Of a stretch of DNA of 40,284 nucleotides, positions 1 through 19,508 are shown piece by piece. Source of the stretch: Guillardia theta CCMP2712. Taxonomy: Eukaryota > Protista > Cryptophyta. The notes beneath the pieces were generated by a model. That model did not search any database. It was not told where the DNA came from and saw nothing but the letters and a program-made list of their open reading frames with translations. Where the stretch lies: positions 9,159 to 49,442 of the forward strand of contig NW_005434426.1 in assembly GCF_000315625.1 (NCBI RefSeq). Reading direction: 5' to 3'. The translations under genes were made by a program, and so were the position numbers. Numbering within the stretch: the first letter of the stretch is position 1; the number at the start of each line of letters is the position of its first letter.

Positions 1-1632
1 GGAGTAGCAGGAGGAGGAGGATGAGAAATAGGTGGGGGGGAGGAGCAGGAGCACGATGTGGCAAGGGACGGGGGAGACGACTGGAGCCAACATTCCCACC
101 TGCTCGGAGCCGTAGCGCGAGCTGTGGCCCGGGATGAACATAGGGTTCTGATACCCTCCCTGCCAGTAGGATGATGAAGGGGAGAGGACAGAGACAGATT
201 TGACCTGCAGGACAACCGCCAAGTTTGACAAGCAGTTGACGTGATTCGGGTTGATAGCCAAAGCTGCTCGGTAGCACTCCTGCTGGGAGAGTAAGAGGGG
301 GCGGGGGCGGGGGAGCAGAGGAGGAAGAGGAGGGAGGTGAAAAAAAATGTTGAAGAAAAGGAAAAAAGGAGAGGGCGAGGGCGAGGGCGAGGGCGAGGGC
401 GAGGGCGGAGGGAGGAGGGGAGGAGGGGAGAGGGGAGGAGGGGAGAGGGGAGGAGGGGAGGAGGGGAGGAGGGGAGGAGGGGAGGAGGGGAGGAGGGGAG
501 GAGGGAGGAGGGAGGAGGGGAGGAGGGGAAGGAGGGAGGAGGGGAGGAGGGGAGGNNNNNNNNNNNNNNNNNNNNNNNNNNNNNNNNNNNNNNNNNNNNN
601 NNNNNNNNNNNNNNNNNNNNNNNNNNNNNNNNNNNNNNNNNNNNNNNNNNNNNNNAAGGGAGGGAAGGAAGAGCGATCGCACCTCAGCATACGTGAAGTT
701 GCTGAGCTTGGCATGCTGTAGGACACCCATGTTGCAGAGAGCAGCGACAAGACAATCATTCCTATCAGCTCGTCATGTCCGGCTCCTCCTGCTCCTCCAT
801 CACCATTCTTCTCTCCTAGGAAGATTCAGCGCCTTGGTGAAATAGATTTCCGCTCGCTGGTAGTCTCCTGGCAGCATGCAGTTTACAGCAAGGAAAGAGA
901 AAAGGGGAGAGCGAGGAATGGTGAGAAAGAGGTTGGATAGATGAATCGATGATGATGTTGATGTTGATGATGATGATGGTGATGAAGATGATGACGATGA
1001 TGATGAACGAACAGAGGTTCTTACCATACTCGTATAGCGCGAGCGCATAGTTGTAAACCGTCGGCAAGTGGTCAGAGAACAGATCGGCAAGGCGGCCGAG
1101 GGTGCGATTGAGCCTCTGGTATCATTTCCATCATCACAACCATAACTGACACATCTTATCAACTCCAACCTTCTTCGGCCAGCGCGGCACGAGATCGTTG
1201 ATCCTTTGCTCGAAGTCAGACACCAAGTCTCTCGTGCTGTTGCTCTGAGTGTCCTGACACAACCCGTCAGGTCAGGACGGCAAGATCCTCCAGCACCAGA
1301 ATCTCGGCGGGAATATCCAGCGTGAAATTTTTCAGCATGGTTATCAGGCTTTCTTCATCACCCTCCTCCCCCCCCTCCTCCTCCTCCTCGAAAATCTCAC
1401 TCTGCTTGTCCGACTTCCCAGAATCATCGTCGTCGTCGGAGTTTCCTCCTCGCAAGTTGAGCGTGGACAGCGTGCGGTGGCCAGGAGCGCTCGAGATCCT
1501 CGGAGGCAGTTCGGCAACTCCCACCAACAGACGCTGCGGGGTAGAGGTCGAGGAGGCAGAGCAGAGCCAGGAGAGGAAGAGGAAGAAAGCAGATGCCTTG
1601 AGCAGCAGCATCCTCTTGGGAGAGGAGACCAT
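1..1632 (-). CDS. Multi-exon TPR-repeat protein with N-terminal signal peptide and LRGG motif (3' end outside window)
   Basis: ATG at 1632. Hydrophobic N-terminus (MLLLKASAFFLFLSWLCSA), then an S/T/R-rich spacer, TLNLRGG and an acidic tract. Downstream exons give TPR-consensus peptides: VYNYALALYEYGK; GDYQRAEIYFTKALNL; AALCNMGVLQHAKLSNFTYAE (~683-761); ECYRAALAINPNHVNCLSNLAVVLQ (~205-279). The last two have GT-AG boundaries. Confidence 0.8.
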
Positions 1633-1754
1633 GGGGGTTAGAATGAGATGGAGGAAGCAGTGACGAATGAAACCCTAGCTCGATCTTGATCCGAGAATGT
1701 CAGCATGGCATGCTGCTCTGACACCTGACGGCCTGATGGACATGATAAGCTCAG

Positions 1755-1835
1755 ATGCATCATTATCTCCATCATCATCATCTCCATCATCATCATCATC
1801 ATCATCATCTCCATCATCATCATCATCATCATCAT

Positions 1836-1867
<32 letters not shown>

Positions 1868-1875
1868 CTATCATC
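1755..1875. repeat. (CAT)n microsatellite with periodic CTC interruptions
   Basis: Directly visible; source of the spurious poly-H/M/S ORFs. Confidence 0.95.
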
Positions 1876-2476
1876 TATGGGTCATCCATTTTTATCTTTT
1901 CCTTTCCTCATTTGCATCCAAGCATCCAACTCAATTCAAATCTAGATACCCTTCTATCGTCCTCTTTCATCCTCTCGTTTTCTCATACATGTTTCTTTCA
2001 CTTCACTTCACTGGGCTTTTAGCTTCTAACTCTCTCCTCTTTTAATTCTCCTCTTTGCTATTCTCTCCTAATTCTCTTCTCTCCTCCTTCCCCCTCACCT
2101 CTCCAGTTCTCTGGCTCTCTCGTACTTCTCAATCTTCGCCGCACTACCTTGAAACATCCATTCTCCTCTTCTTCCCTCCTCCCCATCTCACCCCTATTCT
2201 CTCCCCCCACTCCATTCCTCCTCTTCTCGCTTCTTTCCTTCGATATCTCTGTACTCCCCACTTCCTACCCTTTCCTTCTATCAGTCTGGTCCAGTCTTGC
2301 TCTACCCCCCGCTCTGCCGGAAGCCACAACGTTTCTCAAGGTTGTAGTTGATGAGTCCGTTGGTATTGTTGCGGTCGACATTCCTGTTCTTTCTCTTGTC
2401 CTGCTCCACACTGTTGTTGTCCTTGATGCTTTGACTGTCTTATTGTGTTGTGTTGTTACTTTGTTGTGTTGTTCGC

Positions 2477-2768
2477 TTGTAGTCTTGTAGTCTTGTGGTC
2501 TTGTAGTCATGTAGTCTTGTAGTCTTGTAGTCATGTAGTCTTGTAGTCTTGTAGTCTTGTAGTCTTGTAGTCTTGTAGTCTTGTAGTCTTGTAGTCTTGT
2601 AGTCATGTAGTCATGTAGTCTTGTAGTCATGTAGTCTTGTAGTCTTGTAGTCTTGTAGTCTTGTAGTCTTGTTCTGTTTTTGTCTTTCCTTGTTTTCTTC
2701 TTGCCCTGTCCCCTTGTAGTCTTGTTCTGTTTTTGTCTTTCCTTGTTTTCTTCTTGCCCTGTCCCCTT
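2477..2768. repeat. 8-bp tandem repeat GTAGTC(T/A)T (~24 copies) followed by a ~53-bp tandem duplication
   Basis: Array at about 2477-2670. The unit ttgtagtcttgttctgtttttgtctttccttgttttcttcttgccctgtcccctt occurs at ~2661 and ~2714. Confidence 0.95.
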
Positions 2769-2917
2769 CACATCAGCCCTTTCACCATCTCGTGGGGCGG
2801 ATTTCAACCGAGGGGTAGGGTGGGTTCTTGTGGTAGGATATTGTGCGGTCATTTAAGGTCTAAGTGGGGGTAGGGTACTTCATTTGACAGGGTGGGGAAA
2901 ATGAGGTGGTGAAGGCG

Positions 2918-3852
2918 ATGGCGACAGTCGGGGCGCTTGTCGTCCAGCGGGGTGAGCGATGAGGGGAGGGGAGAGGAGGGAGGAGGGAGGAGAGGACAGG
3001 TGAGAGGAGAGCAGGGGAGAGGATGGGAGAGGACGGACTCTAAGTGTCATACTGATCGACTTCCTTATACCCCAGCGTGCTTCATTTTCATGTGCATCCT
3101 CCACGCCTACAGCATGGTGGATGTAACAGAGACCCTCCCATCCACCTTGCGGCTCAGAGGAGGGATGCATCTATTCAACGAAGCCATGTATGCGCTAGAT
3201 GACGAGGTCGACCTCCCAGACGCTTACCACGATGAGAATATTCGGGAGCAGATACAGAAAAGGTTTCACAAGCTGGTAAGCCCTAGCACGAGTGGGTTGG
3301 CCGTCGACTTTCCAGCCATGCAGGAGCGATAGTGACGGGTTTGCAGTTTGACGATCCGAGCAACACAGAGCTCTACGACGCTGTGAGTTTGTGAGTCTGC
3401 AGGAGGCTGCTGGTCTGAAATCCCAGCCAGATAAAGCTCTTTAGGAGGAACAAGCTTGCGCACAAAAAGGTGATTCATTCCCCTGCTTGCTCACAGCTGG
3501 TCAACCCAAGTTGCCAGGAGCTGCCGATACCCATCCACCCAGTGGTAGATCCCATGGTCAGTAATCTTGTGCCACTGCTTGCCATGTGCATGACGCGGTG
3601 CAACCAGCTTGCTGAGATCAGGAGAAGAAATCAAGGTGCAGCTCAGTTCGATTCAAGGGATGTCTGACACCTTTGAAAGATGCCGCGGCTTTCCGGAGTA
3701 AAGATACGCTGCGGAAGAGGAGCAAGATAAAGCGAAGGCACATCCTATCCCATGTTCTATCCAGCAAGAAGCGCAAGGCTAAGAAACAACTCCATGGGAA
3801 ACAACAGAGGTTGAGAAAGAGGAGAAGCTCAAGGGGCCCTGACAAGAAATGA
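2918..3852 (+). CDS. Small multi-exon protein: signal peptide, STLRLRGG-M motif, acidic middle, strongly K/R-rich C-terminus; function unknown
   Basis: ATG 2918 and GT-AG intron 2952-3075 give MATVGALVVQRACFIFMCILHAYSMVDVTETLPSTLRLRGGMHLFNEAMYALDDEVDLPDAYHDENIREQIQKRFHKL. Further short exons follow (FDDPSNTELYDA; IKLFRRNKLAHKK; LVNPSCQELPIPIHPVVDPM; LAEIRRRNQ). The final exon ends ...RKRSKIKRRHILSHVLSSKKRKAKKQLHGKQQRLRKRRSSRGPDKK with TGA at 3850-3852. Confidence 0.75.
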
Positions 3853-3986: not shown

Positions 3987-4300
3987 TCTATCGGAGTTGC
4001 CGGTGAGCCCCCCTATCATTCTTGTCCAGACCACAATCAACCTGCCTGTACACCGCCAACACACATGCATTGTTTACCAGGGTCTGAACATGGCCTCGTT
4101 CCTCACCCTGCGAAAGCACGGGTCACTCACTCGCAGGACAGGAGGACTCAGGACAAGTTCTATACTCACTTGGTGACGAGGCCCGCGATCCTGTTGGCAG
4201 CCTTTCTGTCCTTGTTCTCATCATGCTTGCCAAGCGGGTTGAACGGGTCATAGTTCACTCCATTGTTGAATCCCACGCCAAAGAGCATGGTGGTGGAGAT
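3987..4300 (-). CDS. Probable small hypothetical protein (start and end uncertain)
   Basis: Phase-compatible exons 4170-4300 (ISTTMLFGVGFNNGVNYDPFNPLGKHDENKDRKAANRIAGLVT) and 4078-4107 (VRNEAMFRP) have canonical CAG/GTGAG and CAG/GTAAA sites. Confidence 0.45.
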
Positions 4301-5059
4301 CTGGAGAAAGCTCGTGAGTTTACTTGAATGCTGACAACATTGCTGACAGCGAACTTTGACCACTCGTTTCTGTTACACAAGACATTGCTCTACAACATGA
4401 AAGAACAAGTATGTACAGAGAGCACTCCATTCCAACAAAACAACCCTATCTTTGTCCCTTCACCACAGCGCTGATTTGTTATCAAATCAAGGGGAATACC
4501 ACAGATCATTTCATCCAGCAGGGCACGTAATCAACAGAAGTGATCTTTCTGACATATCGTAAACGATTCCTGCCCTCTCCCTCACCTCTCCGACGGCCTT
4601 CGTCGCCTCTTCCCCCTTCGTGCATGGCAGGTAGCTGAACATGGTCTGTGCTCCAACCCCGAAATAGAACTATTTGATAACCCCTGTCCCACCCACCCCT
4701 CCTCAGTGTACCCCCCTGTTTAACCCTCCAACTACCCCCATATTTCCATTGTTTCGGTCCTCCCACACCCCCTGCACGCAAGCTTTCACTGAGCGTTCTC
4801 GGCCCGGCACAGATCCCGCTGAGCCTGAGTGCGGCAGGCCCGGGTCCGATCACATTGAAGGGCCTCAGGCTCGGAGCGGCCCGGCCCGGCCCGGAGGCTC
4901 GGGACTGAATCCGCCGTCCGACGACGGTCCGATCGGCCGGCGTCAAGTGCGACAACGACTGCCAGATCCCCTTGCCTGATTTATTTCAGTGGGTCGTCTG
5001 GAAGTGTCACACCGCTATCATATCATCCATCCCACTGTCAGCCCAGCTGGAGCTTACGG

Positions 5060-5960
5060 CTCCGATGATCCCTCATGGAGTTTTCTCGGTTCTGAAGTAA
5101 TCGGGCTTACCTTTCTGAGCCCCAGCGATCTTTGTTGGCACCGTGACCACTCCAGCTTCTCTACTCCACTGTGAGTCACAGTTCGAGTAACCGGCCACCC
5201 GGTTGATGAACTTCTGTCTCAGTTTACCCCCGGGAGTCAGCGCACGATCTGGCACTCAAAGTACAAACCTTGGGATCCGGCGTTGAGCAGCAGCCTATCA
5301 GCTTGGTGACGGTGACTGCCGCTGACAAGTTTCTTCATGGACTGCCGATTGACCTCCCGCCGCTGCACTGCGATCAGGGTTGAAATGTCACCATCTTCTC
5401 CGTCATCCTGGGGGGACCACACACATGGCAACCTGCAGGCACCGCAGCCCGTTATGGACTGATGCGCATGAGAAGTGCAATGCTGTTGTCCTCAGTACCC
5501 TCATCAAAGATTCAGGACTGAGATGCCGCGTCCACGTGCAAGGGCGTCACCAGCCGGGGCAGAATGTTTCCCAACATTGGCCCTGAAGATCATCACGCTG
5601 AGGGGGATTTTGAACTTTCCGCAATGGGCAGGGGATTGCTCGGGAGCAAAACTGCAAGCAGCAGCACAGAGGAAAGATCCGGAGGGCATCGTAAATGCAT
5701 ATGCTCAGCACGTCCCGCCAAAGGTCTTTCTTCCCATCACATTGCCAGCACTGATGGACTCTTGCAGGATTGGCAACAAGGATGATGCGTTGCGCGTTCT
5801 GCTCGCAGGATGTCTCTGGTGATCCGACCTGTAAACGCATCCGGTCCAGGATCTTTCGTCAGTTCAAGGCCTCCCTGTCTTTCGCTGCCATCATCTCGGG
5901 TGCCGCAGTGCGTTCCGGTATGCGTCTCATTCCTGACAGTTGTGAAGGTATCAGTAAAAA
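5060..5960 (-). CDS. Possible multi-exon hypothetical gene; structure not resolved
   Basis: Exon-like segments bounded by AG/GT on the minus strand (KFINRVAGYSNCDSQWSREAGVVTVPTKIAGAQK|gtaag; LPCVWSPQDDGEDGDISTLIAVQRREVNRQSMKKL; Cys-rich FCSRAIPCPLRK...QCWETFCPG). No family recognised, and the strand is not certain. Confidence 0.3.
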
Positions 5961-6022
5961 GCACGTAAGTTTAGAGTGTAATGGCCGCAGTGGAAGCCGT
6001 GGAAGACTTAAGAATCAGTACG

Positions 6023-6469
6023 AGGAGAGTAGAGGAGATCAGGAGAGTAGAGGAGATCAGGAGAGTCGAGGAGATCAGGAGAGTCGAGGAGATCAGGAGA
6101 GTCGAGGAGATCAGGAGAGTAGAGGAGATCAGGAGAGTCGAGGAGATCAGGAGAGTCGAGGAGATCAGGAGAGTCGAGGAGATCAGGAGAGTAGAGGAGA
6201 TCAGGAGAGTAGAGGAGATCAGGAGAGTCGAGGAGATCAGGAGAGTCGAGGAGATCAGGAGAGTAGAGGAGATCAGGAGAGTAGAGGAGATCAGGAGAGT
6301 AGAGGAGATCAGGAGAGTCGAGGAGATCAGGAGAGTCGAGGAGATCAGGAGAGTCGAGGAGATCAGGAGAGTCGAGGAGATCAGGAGAGTCGAGGAGATC
6401 AGGAGAGTCGAGGAGATCAGGAGAGTAGAGGAGATCAGGAGAGTCGAGGAGATCAGGAGAGTCGAGGAG
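6023..6469. repeat. 18-bp minisatellite AGGAGAGT(A/C)GAGGAGATC, ~25 copies
   Basis: Perfect tandem units differing only at one A/C position; no spacers. Confidence 0.97.
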
Positions 6470-6531
6470 GCTTGACCCTGACACGTCAACTTGCTGGCCA
6501 TACGGCGAGAAGTCAAAAACTTGTTGAGCCT

Positions 6532-6669
6532 CTTTACTCAAAGTTAAGTTAAAAATTCAAAAATCAGCACTACGGCGAGGAGTTGAGTAGTAAACAGGGC
6601 CGCTGAGGCCGCTCCGAAGGTCACCGTGGCACCGGGCCTGATTTTTGACTTAACGGGAGTTGAGTAAAG
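6532..6669. mobile_element. Candidate MITE-like element with imperfect terminal inverted repeats
   Basis: Left end ctttactcaaagttaagtt...aaaaatcag (6532-6567). The right end (6638-6669) reverse-complements to ctttactcaactcccgttaagtcaaaaatcag. The same motif recurs at 20100-20127. No clear target-site duplication (TSD). Confidence 0.4.
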
Positions 6670-7499: not shown

Positions 7500-8180
7500 A
7501 TGGTGCACGCGATTGGTGAAGGAAGATCGAGAGAAACAGAGCAACAGGCTTCGAAAAGAATTGGTATGCACCTTCAACTATCGGATATCGTGTCGCTGTT
7601 TCACCTTCGACAGACAGAGGCTGCAAAACTCCTGGTGAGCCTTGAAAATTCTTTCTATTGTGTTTCATAATTGTGGTTGAATGACTTCTTTGCTCAGGGA
7701 ATATCATTGTCAGCAATGAAGAATGCTTGCAGACGGGTTGGAATCACACGTTGGCCGTATTCCCGAAGCCGCCCAAATCTACCAGACGAACAATCGCATT
7801 TCAGCAGCCAATCAGGTGCAGAAAGTCCTGCTTCTTCAGATACTTTGCTGCAGACCGATGATGGTTTATCCTCGGAGACATCCGAATCTACCACATATGA
7901 AGCTACTACACAATCGGTTGGTATCTTCACAGATGAAGGTTCATCACAAATGGTATCAACGGGTCTAGGAACAACCAGAGAAAGCGTCCAGGATCCAAAC
8001 ACAGACAATCCTGTTGACACCTTCCAGGTCGACGTGCCTTCATTTGACGGGAGTGTACAGGCTGTGTCCTTCAACTACAACGAAGCACCCAACAATTTTT
8101 GCAGACATATCGGTGAGCGGGAAGATGATTTTCCTCCGCTGACTGAAGGATGGATTCACAACTTCATTGAATCAATCTAA
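7500..8180 (+). CDS. RWP-RK domain transcription factor
   Basis: Exons 7500-7634 and 7698-8180 (GT-AG intron) give LQLSDIVSLFHLRQTEAAKLLGISLSAMKNACRRVGITRWPYSR, which matches the RWP-RK consensus, followed by an S/T/acidic tail. Confidence 0.92.
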
Positions 8181-14794: not shown

Positions 14795-17700
14795 TCAGAC
14801 TCGCTGAGGATACGTGAGCACTACGGAGTGTACGATGATGGCTGTGTTCCCGGGAGGTACTTCCATCGTCAGGTCGACCGATCGTTTCAGGGCGAACTGG
14901 CGCATGATAGCGAGCGGGATACTGATGCTGGTCACGAAGCCCTTGGAAGGCTCGTACTGGGAGTAGTCCCCCGCAAACAACCAGCCGATCTCCTCCCCGT
15001 CGTTGCCTGCCCTCAGTCTGACGGCGTTCAAGAAGGGCCACCGACTCTGCTGCTGCTTCCACTCGGCTCGAGGGTCCCGCGAGCGCAAGAGCTGGACGTA
15101 GAAGGGCTCTCTCCCCGCGAACAAGTAGGGCTGCGGGTCAGTCAGCGTGTTCAGCTTCGTGTCCTGGCTGGTGAAGCTCTCGGCCTGCCGATAGCCCTTG
15201 TCCTCCAGGTACGCGTGCACCCACAGCAGAGCGTCTCCTGCTGCCGGGGGAGCGTCGCCTTGGAAGGTGAAGTGGAACTTTGAAGGACGGTAGAGGCGCG
15301 AGCCGAACCCCATCCCGCTGCTCTCGTCCAGCTGCAGCATCCGCGCGTTCCCGCTCGCGTACGTCAGCTTGAGGGGGTTGAATCGAACGGGAGAGCGCTG
15401 GGAGATCTGAGGTGCAGTCAGGAGCTCCTCGACGGGACGAGAACGTACCTTGAAGTTGAGCGACAGGGAGGAGGAGTTGGCCAGGGCCTGACGCAGCAGA
15501 TCTCTAGAGATGTTGAACATCTCTGTGTGACTGGCCGAGCGATTCTTGTCGATGAGGGTGAAAGCCGACCTGTAACAACTTCTGTTGGGGTACAAGCCGA
15601 CGCCAAGACAGAGCTCTGCGATGTCTGCCGGTTGACTGATGGCGAAGAACTTGGTGCCTGAGCTCGGCTCCTGTGAGTAGGAGCGGTCATGGAGGCAGAG
15701 GGTGAGAGGGAGAGCAAGCTACCACGCTTGTGAACAGTGTCGACAACAAGGTATCGTTGTAGTAGACGCCAATAGAGCCCTCCATGCGATTTGCCTCTGC
15801 TGTCACTTTGATGTGGCCGTCGCTCAAGACCGGAACCCCTTGGGGGACGGGGAAGGAAACGTTGTAAGACAGGTCGCTCGGTTGCTGCAGATACACAACA
15901 TCAACTCGCTGACAGCAGCTCGCTGCAGTGCTAGTCGCTGATTTTACCTCGAAAACATTCCCAGGGATGGCGACAGAGACGCATGAAGAAGGGTTGAAGG
16001 CCAGGGTGAGCGATTGAATCTGCAGGCGTCCTGTGCAGTTGGGCGAGGTCTCAAGAGTGAAATACTGCGACGCGGGTGAGCAACATGCTTTTCAAGGAAG
16101 AAACAGAGAGCAGTACCATAACTTCATCAGAGCTCATTGCAATCATCTCGTCCTGCGACAGTACGATGGCGCCTTGCAACTTGTCAACACTCTGCAGAAA
16201 CATCCAAGTGACTGAGCGGTCGACAGCCATCCATGCGTCCTCACCCGAGACTGTTCGTCCTTGTCGAAGAGAACTCCAAGAGTTTCGCCCTGCTCGCCCT
16301 TGACAGCGATGTTGCACCAGGGATAGAACATGTCGAGGTTCTCGAGGATGTGAATCTGAGCCGTCAGAGTTGCCGCGCTGCAGACTGTGGGAAGAGACTG
16401 GAAGGCGAAGACTCTTCGGAAGGGGAGCAGCAATGACGACGACTCTCCGACGCTTTGCTGGCAGAAGAAAGGTCGAGAGTTGGCAAATGCCTGAACAAAC
16501 GTCACGATCAATGCAGGACATCGACTGCCGGGACTGATCTACCCGCTCTGCCTCCGTGAAGTCAAGGTAGCTGATGCGATAGGTCGAGGAGCTGTTCAAC
16601 GGTTCAATGTTCTCAGAGCTGTTCCCGATCACTTGAACCTGTTTTCCACCATGTTTAGCACGAAGAACAGCATGCTATGAGACATGAAGTACAGCATGCT
16701 ATGAGACATGAAGTATGGAAGGAGAGGAGGCAGAGGAAGGAGGGAAAGGACAGGGTTCCTACCCTGGCTGCGTACTTGCTACTCAGCAAATATTCAGCCC
16801 CGCTAGCGATGTTGGCCCAGCTTGGTACCTTGACAACCATCAGGACGACAGGTAGGAGGAAGCACTGACCTCATGAGAGTCTCGGTAAGCGCTGCCGTTC
16901 ACTGACAGCGTAGCGGTTCTGGTGGCTCCGTCGTAGCGGACGACTCTAGCCTGCCGCAGGAGGGTCAGGGAGGAATCGCAAGGGAGGGAAGCTCGTGCCC
17001 GGTAGCTCGTCCCGATGAAGTGAATCAGCTCTCCTTCGAACCATCCGTCCGCTGCTGGAGCCCGAGGGCCCAGACCGACGCTACACACGCACTGCCCGGA
17101 GGAACAGGCTGAGGTAGACGCCATGCAGAGGGAGCTGGAGTTGTAAGACGTCCCCGCGCATTCGCACGAGAGGCTGCTAGATAGACTCCCATACGAGGAG
17201 TTGAGGAAATCAACTGATCGCGCCCGATCGATGATGACGTTTGAGGGAGTCTTGGTTATCGCGTACGCATCTCCTTGCAGTGGAGTGTGTTGAAGGCCAG
17301 TCGCAAGCGTCAACAACTTCGAATCAGCTACAACAAGCATCAGTTGTGCAGCAAGCAAGCAGGTCACAGACTACCTTCATACTGCTGTATCCCCACAGCG
17401 TGCCCCGCGTTCTCTCCGGAGAGCATGACAAGGGTGTAACCGTTGTAGTAGCCGTCAACTGCACTGGCGTCTGTTCCCCACAGTGAGACATGCGACGCGT
17501 CTGTCGAGTTCTCTACAAGTCGGCCAGGGGTCGAGTCCCCGACCACTCCAAACAGGAAGAAGTCTTGACAGCCCTCGCCCCCATGGGAGATGGTGAAGCC
17601 CACCGAGTCTTGGTAGCCCTCGCCGGGATTCAGGATAGTCACCGAGGATAGGTACCCGCTCAGAGACGGCTCGAGTAGGATGTTCCAGCAGCTGGGGTTC

Positions 17701-19508
17701 TGCTGTGGGCCAGGGGACACCTTGAGAAAGGTGAAGGGGTACACGTATCCGGCGCCTGGATCTACCACCATGACGTTGGAGAGCGCGCTGCCGTTGGAGT
17801 AGTAGTAGGCAAGGAAACCCGAGCCCTGCTCTTGCCGTGGACATGTCACCGTGGGTATTGAGGCCTGATTGTACCCGTGCCCTCCATCCTGCACTTGGAT
17901 CCGAGTCACGTCCCCGAAGCCGTCGGTGAAGCAATGTGCTCTCAGGCCGTCCCCTCCGCAGCTCTCGTTGCACACTACGATAGCAGGGCCGTCGATGTAG
18001 TACGTGCCCGTCAGGAACTCCCCGTGGGTGGTCGGCTGGATGCTCCTCACCACCCCTTGGATCACGCTGACCTGATCGAAGGGCCCTTCCTGTACCGAGA
18101 CGACCTCCACGTTCCCTTCAGGGCAGCGGATCGTTGGCTTGTGGCTCAGTGAGTACCCGGCGCCGCCATTGACGATGGAGGTCGCGGTGATATCTCCAGC
18201 AGACGCAGTGCACTGCACAGTCAGGCCGGACCCTTCGCAAGGCAGCTCGCAACTGATCCATGCAGGGCCTGACACGTACCCTGATCCTACAACAGCAGAA
18301 CTCACGAAGTCCAGGGATGTGACTGTCCCCTTGCTGTCGACAGCAGCGATGCTGAACGATCCCTGGTTCCCCTCGGCCACCGAGGCAGCACAGTCGACGC
18401 CACCGGACTGTATCACAACGGAGGGGATGGAGTAGAGGACGTTGAAGGAGGCGTTGAACCCCGTGCCATTGGGGGAGGAGGCGACGAGGAACCCTCCCCG
18501 CTGACAGCCTGATCCAGCATGCACGATCGAGACTGAAACGATTCCACTCCTGATGTCCCACTGGAATGCACCGACGTAATCGGTGATCTCACCGATCATT
18601 CCTGCAGATTTCCCTCCTGAGAGCTCCATGTGTTTGCCAACATAGTAGTTGTAGGCGTCAGCAGACGTGAAGAGATCTAGCTTCATATTCCATGTATGAG
18701 AGTTTGCGTCCCAATAGGCCGATCGAAGATTTCCTTGAGATAAAGCCAAGAAAGTAGCGCATTCCAACCCTGGTCTGTTGAACTCAAGCTCATACCTGAG
18801 CGCACTTGTTTGGCCGACTTCGTGAAAGATTGAGTCCAAACTGGATGATGTCGCCGTTCCCGGAGAGCTTTGCGATCCTGTTGAAGGCAAATCACCTTCA
18901 ATCATCTGGAACAGACTCAACTGGGTCTTTTCTGTGCCGGAATAATATCCTCCTCGGATCTGAATGAACTCTATGTTGCTCAACGTTTGCATCACGTCAA
19001 ACTTCGTCGCAACCACGTAGTTGATCGGTGTTGTGATCTTTCCATAACGATTCACCTTTGGAATCATTTGCCATTGTTGGTACTCATTGATCTGCACATC
19101 ATACACCCCTGACATAAGAGACCCGTCCCTCACGCCTCTGATCCCTATGTTTGGAAGCCTCTTGTTTGGTATCAGGATCACATCATAATCATCAATGAAA
19201 GCTCCCGACCATTCAAGACTCTGAATTGAAAAGCGGAGGGTGGAGTTGTAACCAGACTCTTTGAACTTGTTCAGCGACCCTTGGGGAGTTTGGAACCACC
19301 AGGAGCAGTTGCAAGCATCTTTCATCTTGATCGCATTATCTCGAGCATTTAGTTCTAGCGTGTATGGATTCTGTGTCCCGTTCGGCATGTACACCGACCA
19401 GTTCTGTTGCACGAAGTTGACGTTGAGAATGACGTCTCCTGGCTTGCAAGAGACGAGCGGCAGCAGGTAGGCAAGAATGAAACTGACGGCCATGAGCATG
19501 GCTGGCAT
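14795..19508 (-). CDS. Large secreted/extracellular protein: signal peptide, laminin B (domain IV)-like region, GxGY beta-repeats, unknown C-terminal domains
   Basis: 714-aa ORF with signal peptide MPAMLMAVSFILAYLLPLVSC. The stretch WWFQTP...GYNSTLRFSI...DYDVILI...VMQTLSNIEFIQIRGGY resembles laminin B. Repeats include IVNGGAGY, VQDGGHGY, VVDPGAGY and ILNPGEGY. Further coding exons continue to the ORF ending ...HSVVLTYPQRV at 14795. Confidence 0.75.

Follow-up and report, generated by a model that had tools for sequence, protein, structure and literature searches.

Proteins that reside in the periplastid compartment (PPC) of complex red plastids, which is what is left of the cytoplasm of the red-algal endosymbiont, carry bipartite signals, and these have been described as a class (Gould et al. 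2006; ASAFind 2.0). Its definition takes in no more than the cleavage region of the signal peptide and the residue that follows the cut (+1); a conserved leader end resembling the tail of ubiquitin is absent from the descriptions that were found. Two adjacent genes in a stretch of 40,284 nucleotides of nuclear DNA from Guillardia theta CCMP2712 (the window, meaning the whole stretch of DNA that was analysed) have the same layout as this class. Both of their leaders end in Leu-Arg-Gly-Gly (LRGG), within a hexapeptide that matches or nearly matches the C-terminus of ubiquitin, and the same motif is present inside the very proteins on which the class was founded. It is very probable that the motif is the terminal mark of the PPC leader.

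Four other described systems are close to this arrangement. Linear ubiquitin precursors, which include polyubiquitin and the ubiquitin-ribosomal fusions, contain the identical hexapeptide with the next protein directly behind it, and the GG/M junction of one of the window genes is as in polyubiquitin (here and below a slash marks the leader border). However, these precursors have a ubiquitin fold before the tail, whereas the window leaders have only 17 and ~35 unstructured-looking residues. The diatom PPC enzyme ptDUP is a deubiquitinase (DUB) of the ubiquitin-specific protease (USP) type, thought to strip the cargo of the symbiont-specific endoplasmic reticulum (ER)-associated degradation-like machinery (SELMA). 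It is thus a ubiquitin-tail protease in the right compartment, although removal of presequences has never been ascribed to it and it is reported to be absent from cryptophytes, the group with the strongest motif. Textbook precedent for genuine processing at Leu-x-Gly-Gly sites outside a ubiquitin fold is provided by the viral papain-like proteases that double as DUBs, but their sites lie in a polyprotein rather than in an organelle leader and no homology is implied. Also of textbook standing are the apicomplexan export elements PEXEL and TEXEL (RxLxE/Q/D and RRLxx, cut by plasmepsin V or ASP5), where a short motif tens of residues behind a signal peptide is likewise cut in a specific compartment to set the destination of the protein. 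These differ in sequence, in the use of an aspartic protease, in being cleaved in the ER or Golgi, and in a destination outside the cell. An RxLR- or PEXEL-type motif is ruled out for the window leaders, as the sequence does not fit.

The two genes are GUITHDRAFT_166766 (P0001), on the plus strand, and GUITHDRAFT_148856 (P0002), on the minus strand, which encodes a tetratricopeptide repeat (TPR) protein and is called the TPR gene below. Both database proteins are 100% identical to the translated exons of the window. They are arranged head to head and start at 2918 (plus) and 1632 (minus). Their features are as follows.

2918..2951, plus strand: exon 1 of the plus gene, with the start codon and the n-region of the signal peptide (junction 2951^3076 in three runs, in agreement with the NCBI model P0001)
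3076..3113, plus strand: the rest of the signal peptide, which ends in ...HAYS at residue 24, from the translation
3114..3164, plus strand: a 17-residue transit-peptide-like spacer ending in LRLRGG (3147-3164), the last six residues of ubiquitin
3165..3852, plus strand: the presumed mature protein of 141 residues, from Met at 3165 to the stop codon at 3850-3852, from spliced contigs
To 3275, then 3347-3382, 3431-3469, 3518-3556, 3608-3635 and 3680-3852, plus strand: exons of the mature part, from spliced contigs
1633..2917, no strand: divergent intergenic region shared by both genes, which holds both 5' untranslated regions (UTRs) and is rich in microsatellites, from the sequence
1549..1632, minus strand: signal peptide of the TPR gene, residues 1 to ~28, in the open reading frame (ORF) from the ATG at 1632, with the core FFLFLSWLC and CSASS at the predicted cut
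1462..1548, minus strand: transit-peptide-like spacer, rich in Ser, Thr, Pro and Arg and net positive, from the translation
1444..1461, minus strand: LNLRGG, residues 58-63, the ubiquitin-tail-like leader end, which fits the consensus [LMI]-x-L-R-G-G
1297..1443, minus strand: start of the presumed mature TPR protein, an acidic stretch and the remainder of exon 1, whose end is put at 1297 by spliced contigs
1170-1253, 1025-1115, 804-867, 683-761, 205-282 and 100-159, minus strand: further exons of the TPR gene, with an assembly gap (556-655) between 683-761 and 205-282

A preliminary description of this DNA, made from the sequence alone, had presented the pair as unrelated genes that each encode a signal peptide, a spacer, LRGG and an acidic region. 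Translation and spliced contigs confirm this series at the positions listed, and the two proteins have only STL(R/N)LRGG in common. Each signal peptide has a basic n-region, a hydrophobic core and small residues at -3/-1. The 24-residue signal-like N-terminus of the plus gene has the core ACFIFMCIL (Kyte-Doolittle 9-residue mean 3.01) and a border, AYS/M, that satisfies the -3/-1 rule; the core of the TPR gene has a mean of 2.29. The residues predicted at +1 are Met in the plus gene and Ser/Thr, non-aromatic, in the TPR gene, in keeping with the rule that PPC-type signals have no Phe, Tyr, Trp or Leu there. The whole leader of the TPR gene has a charge of +6. Behind the motif the charge turns negative, with a net -7 across the first 40 residues in the plus gene and -14 in the TPR gene. 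Since both leaders fit the published PPC-type bipartite signal, both proteins are read as PPC residents.

The plus gene contains the exact ubiquitin C-terminus with Met (3165) directly behind it, as had been noted; the preliminary description saw in this Met a possible ancestral start to which the leader had been added. In the TPR gene, where the LRGG codons are 1444-1455, LNLRGG departs from the ubiquitin tail at the position of Arg72. The absence of a ubiquitin fold is likewise borne out, with no Pfam ubiquitin match at E values up to 0.1. The 17 and ~35 residues between signal peptide and Gly-Gly are too few for the ~70-residue beta-grasp fold, and a hidden fold in the leaders is ruled out by these lengths together with Pfam. 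A six-frame translation of the window contains LRGG five times in total, two of them the leader motifs. A scan of 7 kb of extra flank found no further leaders.

The association of the motif with the PPC is most evident in proteins of known location. Eight G. theta PPC proteins have been localised by green fluorescent protein (GFP) fusion by Gould et al. (2006), as listed in PMC12136025, the ASAFind 2.0 paper. Appendix S3 of that paper was used as the PPC set and part 1 of its Appendix S9 as the cryptophyte plastid set. In 6 of the 8 localised proteins, the leader ends in [L/M/I]-x-L-R-G-G directly before the mature domain. The G. theta proteins with the motif are these.

ugg-t (GFP-localised PPC, Appendix S3): MSLRGG/AGS
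EF-1alpha (GFP-localised PPC, Appendix S3): LRLRGG/GKEKHH, the canonical EF-1alpha start
14-3-3 (GFP-localised PPC, Appendix S3): LRLRGG/VDG
RRM1 (GFP-localised PPC, Appendix S3): LRLRGG/FRG
CyP (GFP-localised PPC, Appendix S3): LRLRGG/GLP
Ubc8 (GFP-localised PPC, Appendix S3): IPLRGG/ANP
sCdc48 (PPC set, Appendix S3): MRLRGG/NVA
FBPase paralogue (plastid set; +1 non-aromatic): ALRLRGG/SAA
TrxH, thioredoxin h (plastid set; +1 non-aromatic): FLRLRGG/GGV

It had been proposed that the motif ends the presequence, and this is upheld by its position in the published proteins: where the mature N-terminus is conserved, the motif directly precedes it. This is seen for the thioredoxin fold, for the Cdc48 N-domain, for the GKEK with which mature EF-1alpha begins and for the glycosyltransferase core in ugg-t. 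The suggestion that it belongs to periplastid proteins holds as well, and it is not a property of stromal ones. None of the 21 stroma-type cryptophyte leaders, those with an aromatic +1, has the motif, against 6 of the 8 validated PPC leaders (Fisher test, p = 5.9e-5). The FBPase paralogue and TrxH are the sole G. theta entries of the plastid set (part 1) with the motif, and as both lack an aromatic +1 they are themselves PPC-type. Counted by rows with a signal peptide, it is present in 7 of 16, against 5e-4 per protein expected from composition (p ~1e-19). For the window, the chance of [LMI]xLRGG within 80 residues in both genes is ~1e-7 from amino-acid composition.

Eleven G. theta leaders, including those of the window, can be aligned on the motif. 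All of them have Leu at P4, Arg at P3 and Gly-Gly at P2-P1. P6 is restricted to Leu, Met and Ile, and 8 of the leaders have Arg at P5; beyond the hexapeptide, in either direction, the sequences differ freely. P1' is never Pro and is Met and Asn in the window genes, a weak observation that chance would often give as well. The consensus is that of ubiquitin residues 71-76 with variation tolerated at the Arg72 position, and the pattern [LIV]xLRGG put forward in the preliminary description agrees with it.

These observations are best accommodated by a mechanism in which the motif is a cleavage site, for which a probability of about 55% is given to the whole. The signal peptide would bring the protein into the ER lumen. 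The spacer, without an aromatic first residue, would then cross the periplastid membrane via SELMA and would not engage the translocons of the plastid envelope. The [L/M/I]-x-L-R-G-G hexapeptide, as a copy of ubiquitin 71-76, would close the leader, and a cytosol-type cysteine protease that reads the ubiquitin tail would cut after the Gly-Gly. With proteases of the DUB or ubiquitin-like (Ubl) type in the PPC and not in the ER lumen, the cut would be made only upon arrival in the PPC. It would free the mature protein and strip it of its import signal; removal of the transit-peptide-like part would prevent onward import, so that the cut would be a mechanism of retention in the PPC. Taken singly, the proposal that the motif is a cleavage site is probable, while for cleavage by a DUB or Ubl-type protease the odds are about even. 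Judged from sequence patterns, cleavage at the Gly-Gly, the kind of enzyme and the role in retention are predictions.

DUB-type cysteine proteases are typical of cytosol-like compartments, and their confinement there would leave the site intact in the ER lumen. The peptides LRGG and RLRGG are minimal substrates of several DUBs, and changing Leu73 of ubiquitin, which is P4 here, blocks cleavage by DUBs.

The PPC of G. theta has a ubiquitin precursor of its own (gt_155024, Appendix S3), with a signal peptide, a spacer, a diverged ubiquitin-like unit ending in LRVRGG, a canonical ubiquitin ending in LRLRGG, and a final Ser-Tyr. This layout means that the PPC must already hold an activity that cuts after RGG. 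The precursor could also be a natural template for the origin of leaders in which only the tail is present. In a diatom, crossing of the periplastid membrane requires no specific motif, and artificial neutral spacers without a motif are functional. This suggests that the role of the motif comes after translocation, rather than in targeting. The diatom ptDUP has earlier been suggested to act in maturation after transport. For the cryptophytes, an obvious candidate for the PPC peptidase is a zinc-finger (ZnF) protein with a Ufm1-specific-peptidase (UfSP) domain, a putative deubiquitinase without an assigned role that has been retained in all four sequenced cryptophyte nucleomorphs (Gt2_270 in PMC6559170).

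The mark reaches the diatoms, as it is seen in five Thalassiosira PPC proteins. Of the T. pseudonana homologues of Phaeodactylum PPC proteins, 23 have a predicted signal peptide, and in 5 of these x-R-G-G is present at the leader end (binomial p ~1e-4). All five are from the ASAFind 2.0 supplement.

Der1-1 (T. pseudonana): FDLRGG/AKK
sTrxH (T. pseudonana): LSLRGG/VVH
sSec14 (T. pseudonana): FQIRGG/SDA
sCdc48-2 (T. pseudonana): GRGG/ASDEEE
sCdc48 (T. pseudonana): ARGG/SVE

Thioredoxin h and Cdc48 carry the mark in both phyla, with the remainder of the leader unrelated. The weaker presence in diatoms suggests that the motif arose early in the evolution of red complex plastids. In T. pseudonana, the model of ptDUP (Thaps3a_21460) contains SIPRGG/SDSDS just before the box of the USP catalytic Cys; the N-terminus of this model looks unreliable, and ptDUP may itself carry the mark at the end of its own leader. 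A broader proposal can be put forward tentatively, in which a cysteine protease specific for the ubiquitin tail would be the general presequence peptidase of the PPC, in cryptophytes and, with looser specificity, in diatoms, its cut in [LMI]xLRGG at the exit of SELMA both maturing the protein and deciding between PPC and stroma. In cryptophytes this enzyme could be the nucleomorph-encoded ZnF/UfSP protein; in diatoms, ptDUP or one of its relatives.

A different enzyme at the same site is the alternative that survives best, although it is doubtful. The motif would be a real processing site, cut by a metallo- or serine-type presequence peptidase of the PPC from outside the ubiquitin system, and its likeness to the ubiquitin tail would be convergent, with the small Gly-Gly preceding the cut and Arg/Leu serving recognition. 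A position at the junction of leader and mature protein suits any peptidase, the looser diatom versions (GRGG, ARGG, IRGG) are in keeping with this, ptDUP is reported absent from cryptophytes, and a nucleomorph-encoded tail-specific protease is mentioned in the literature. However, six positions correspond to ubiquitin 71-76, with P4 Leu and P3 Arg invariant, and this is far tighter than the known sites of stromal and mitochondrial processing peptidases. Moreover, the PPC already requires an enzyme that cuts after LR(L/V)RGG for its own ubiquitin precursor.

It is unlikely that the motif is never cut and acts instead as a mimic of the ubiquitin tail, bound by a receptor (for instance a ZnF-UBP-type reader of free or exposed RLRGG, an E1-like enzyme or a SELMA-associated factor) that sorts or holds PPC residents. 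The strict association with PPC rather than stromal proteins would suit a sorting signal equally. The motif, however, invariably closes the leader and stands before conserved mature N-termini such as the GKEK of EF-1alpha, as expected of a cleavage site, and import into the PPC of a diatom works with artificial neutral spacers that do not have it. In addition, the known readers of the tail require, according to textbooks, a free C-terminal Gly-Gly, which itself needs cleavage.

Distinctly unlikely is the explanation that the leaders are decayed N-terminal ubiquitin fusions of which only the tail is left, as a working or merely tolerated relic. The decayed ubiquitin-like unit ending in LRVRGG, between spacer and ubiquitin in the PPC precursor, is in its favour, and both window leaders have STL-x-LRGG, which recalls the STLHLVLRLRGG of ubiquitin. 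Nevertheless, the spacers of 16-17 residues in the plus gene and RRM1 show no trace of a fold, the 11 leaders have no ubiquitin-like pattern upstream of P6, and a mere relic would not remain invariant at four positions. An origin by decay of a fusion is compatible with the cleavage mechanism favoured here, as it concerns the origin only.

Coincidence of composition has next to no chance of being the explanation: spacers often contain Arg, Gly and Leu, in a genome of moderately high GC content, but a chance origin is refuted by the counts (~1e-7 for both window genes, p ~1e-19 in the PPC set and no stroma-type leader with the motif).

Several points weigh against cleavage of the leaders by a ubiquitin-tail protease. 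What most DUBs bind is the globular body of ubiquitin, and a bare tail peptide is a poor substrate for them. The signal peptides of the window genes were assigned from hydrophobicity and the -3/-1 rule rather than with a trained predictor, and residence of both window proteins in the PPC is predicted from the leader alone. The collections searched contain no orthologue of either window gene by which conservation of their own motifs could be judged. Two proteins of the GFP set, hemE and iddi, do not have the motif, so it is not obligatory in G. theta; in T. pseudonana it is looser and rarer than in G. theta, and most of the Thalassiosira PPC rows are without it. A phylogeny from 2025 places no cryptophyte in the ptDUP clade and calls for an alternative enzyme. 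Finally, the neo-N-termini expected for sTrxH, Der1-1, sSec14 and sCdc48-2 are not found in the part of the T. pseudonana N-terminome tables (PMC3774753) that was searched, where peptides are given without the preceding residues.

The gene models on which the leaders depend are backed by spliced transcript contigs from three runs of three different studies, and this extends to the small exon that encodes part of the plus-gene signal peptide. The contigs extend to 1757 for the TPR gene and to ~2896 for the plus gene. Raw RNA reads of one run (X16), sampled at 6%, are sparse over both genes; the repeats at 1758-1877 and 943-1011 were left out of the read analysis. The first 11 codons of the plus gene are on the separate small exon, and its splice to exon 2 (3076-3275) is RNA-supported. 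Spliced contigs place the plus-gene introns at 2952-3075, 3276-3346, 3383-3430, 3470-3517, 3557-3607 and 3636-3679. The spliced gene thus has seven exons and 182 residues, whereas the public model, of 96 amino acids, reads into intron 2 and meets an early stop. A three-codon upstream ORF (ATG AGG TGG TGA) is present at 2901-2912, 6 bases 5' of the plus start codon and within the 5' UTR of the longest contig. At the other end, transcripts of the plus gene reach ~3867 and overlap by ~25 bases with a convergent, well-expressed minus-strand gene (~4074-4642), the poly(A) site of which is seen as poly-T loose ends of raw RNA reads at 3840-3842. Tandem repeats in the intergenic region shared by the pair, at 1750-1870 and 2470-2680, are (CAT)n and an array with an 8-base unit of the TCTTGTAG type.

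In the TPR gene, spliced contigs of the three runs place introns at 1254-1296, 1116-1169, 868-1024 and 762-803. Three of these GT..AG introns are very short, with 43 (1254-1296), 42 (762-803) and 54 bases (1116-1169), as the spliced contigs confirm. The gene is broken by N gaps, at 556-655 and in a large gap to the left of the window (the L001 5740-7083 region). Its public model has only 192 residues, having been shortened by the assembly gaps. With an mRNA of ~1.5 kb and these gaps, roughly half of the TPR protein is missing from the genome record.

The single short exons of the TPR gene match the Pfam families TPR_17, TPR_11 and TPR_2 with E values of 6e-5 to 6e-4, just short of the Pfam cut-offs. 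With HMMER against 1.8 billion representatives, the mature part matches multi-TPR proteins with E values down to 2e-24, and only generic, mostly leaderless TPR proteins were found. The mature part of the plus protein has 37 Lys and Arg to 19 Asp and Glu; its N-terminal part is acidic, and its C-terminal half is very basic and contains clusters of the KKRKAKK type. The resemblance of this tail to a nuclear localisation signal suggests that the protein may continue into the nucleomorph. A scan of all its exons found no Pfam family. A word search for orthologues of the two window genes returned only the G. theta models themselves, and metagenome scans found no relatives of the window proteins. 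By these searches, both proteins look lineage-specific.

Elsewhere in the window, an intron-less ORF of 714 residues (17364-19508, minus strand) with a Laminin_B match has a plain signal peptide, without spacer or leader motif. It is probably a secretory protein and makes an in-window contrast to the gene pair. It has an internal IQIRGG near residue 193, within the domain and not at a leader end. A long perfect tandem repeat of 18 bases at 5770-6552 is open in several frames, for example as (ESRGDQ)n, and probably represents a minisatellite and not a coding region. Neighbouring genes encode an RWP-RK domain protein (7671-8180) and a FAST-kinase-like (FAST_1) repeat protein (29.5-31.9 kb); between these, at 21.5-25.3 kb, is a large gene of many exons, and the pieces of it that were tried have no Pfam match.

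PPC-type bipartite signals, SELMA, the ubiquitin of the PPC and ptDUP are known already, and the motif itself could be seen in published sequences from 2006 onwards. In the open literature, LRGG was not found tied to the periplastid, to Guillardia or to plastid targeting, a passing remark in Gould 2006 or Curtis 2012 being possible; nor was the periplastid found linked with diglycine terms, and the papers found on the borders of transit peptides, on the proteome of the PPC and on its prediction make no mention of the motif. The new elements are the link to GFP-localised PPC proteins, the comparison with stroma-type leaders, the occurrences in diatoms, the 11-leader consensus and the nucleomorph-encoded candidate peptidase.

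It has so far been unexplained how PPC residents lose their leaders and what, besides the missing aromatic residue, keeps them apart from stromal cargo, and we know of no presequence peptidase of the PPC. A mark of six residues in a fixed position would provide a concrete candidate cleavage site and a short list of enzymes. It would also be a sharp feature for the prediction of PPC and nucleomorph proteomes in cryptophytes, for which current predictors use the signal-peptide cleavage region only. The motif would mechanistically link the processing of leaders to the ubiquitin-dependent SELMA translocon and, if the broader proposal of a general PPC peptidase is true, no earlier case would be on record of import into an organelle with a deubiquitinase as its processing peptidase.

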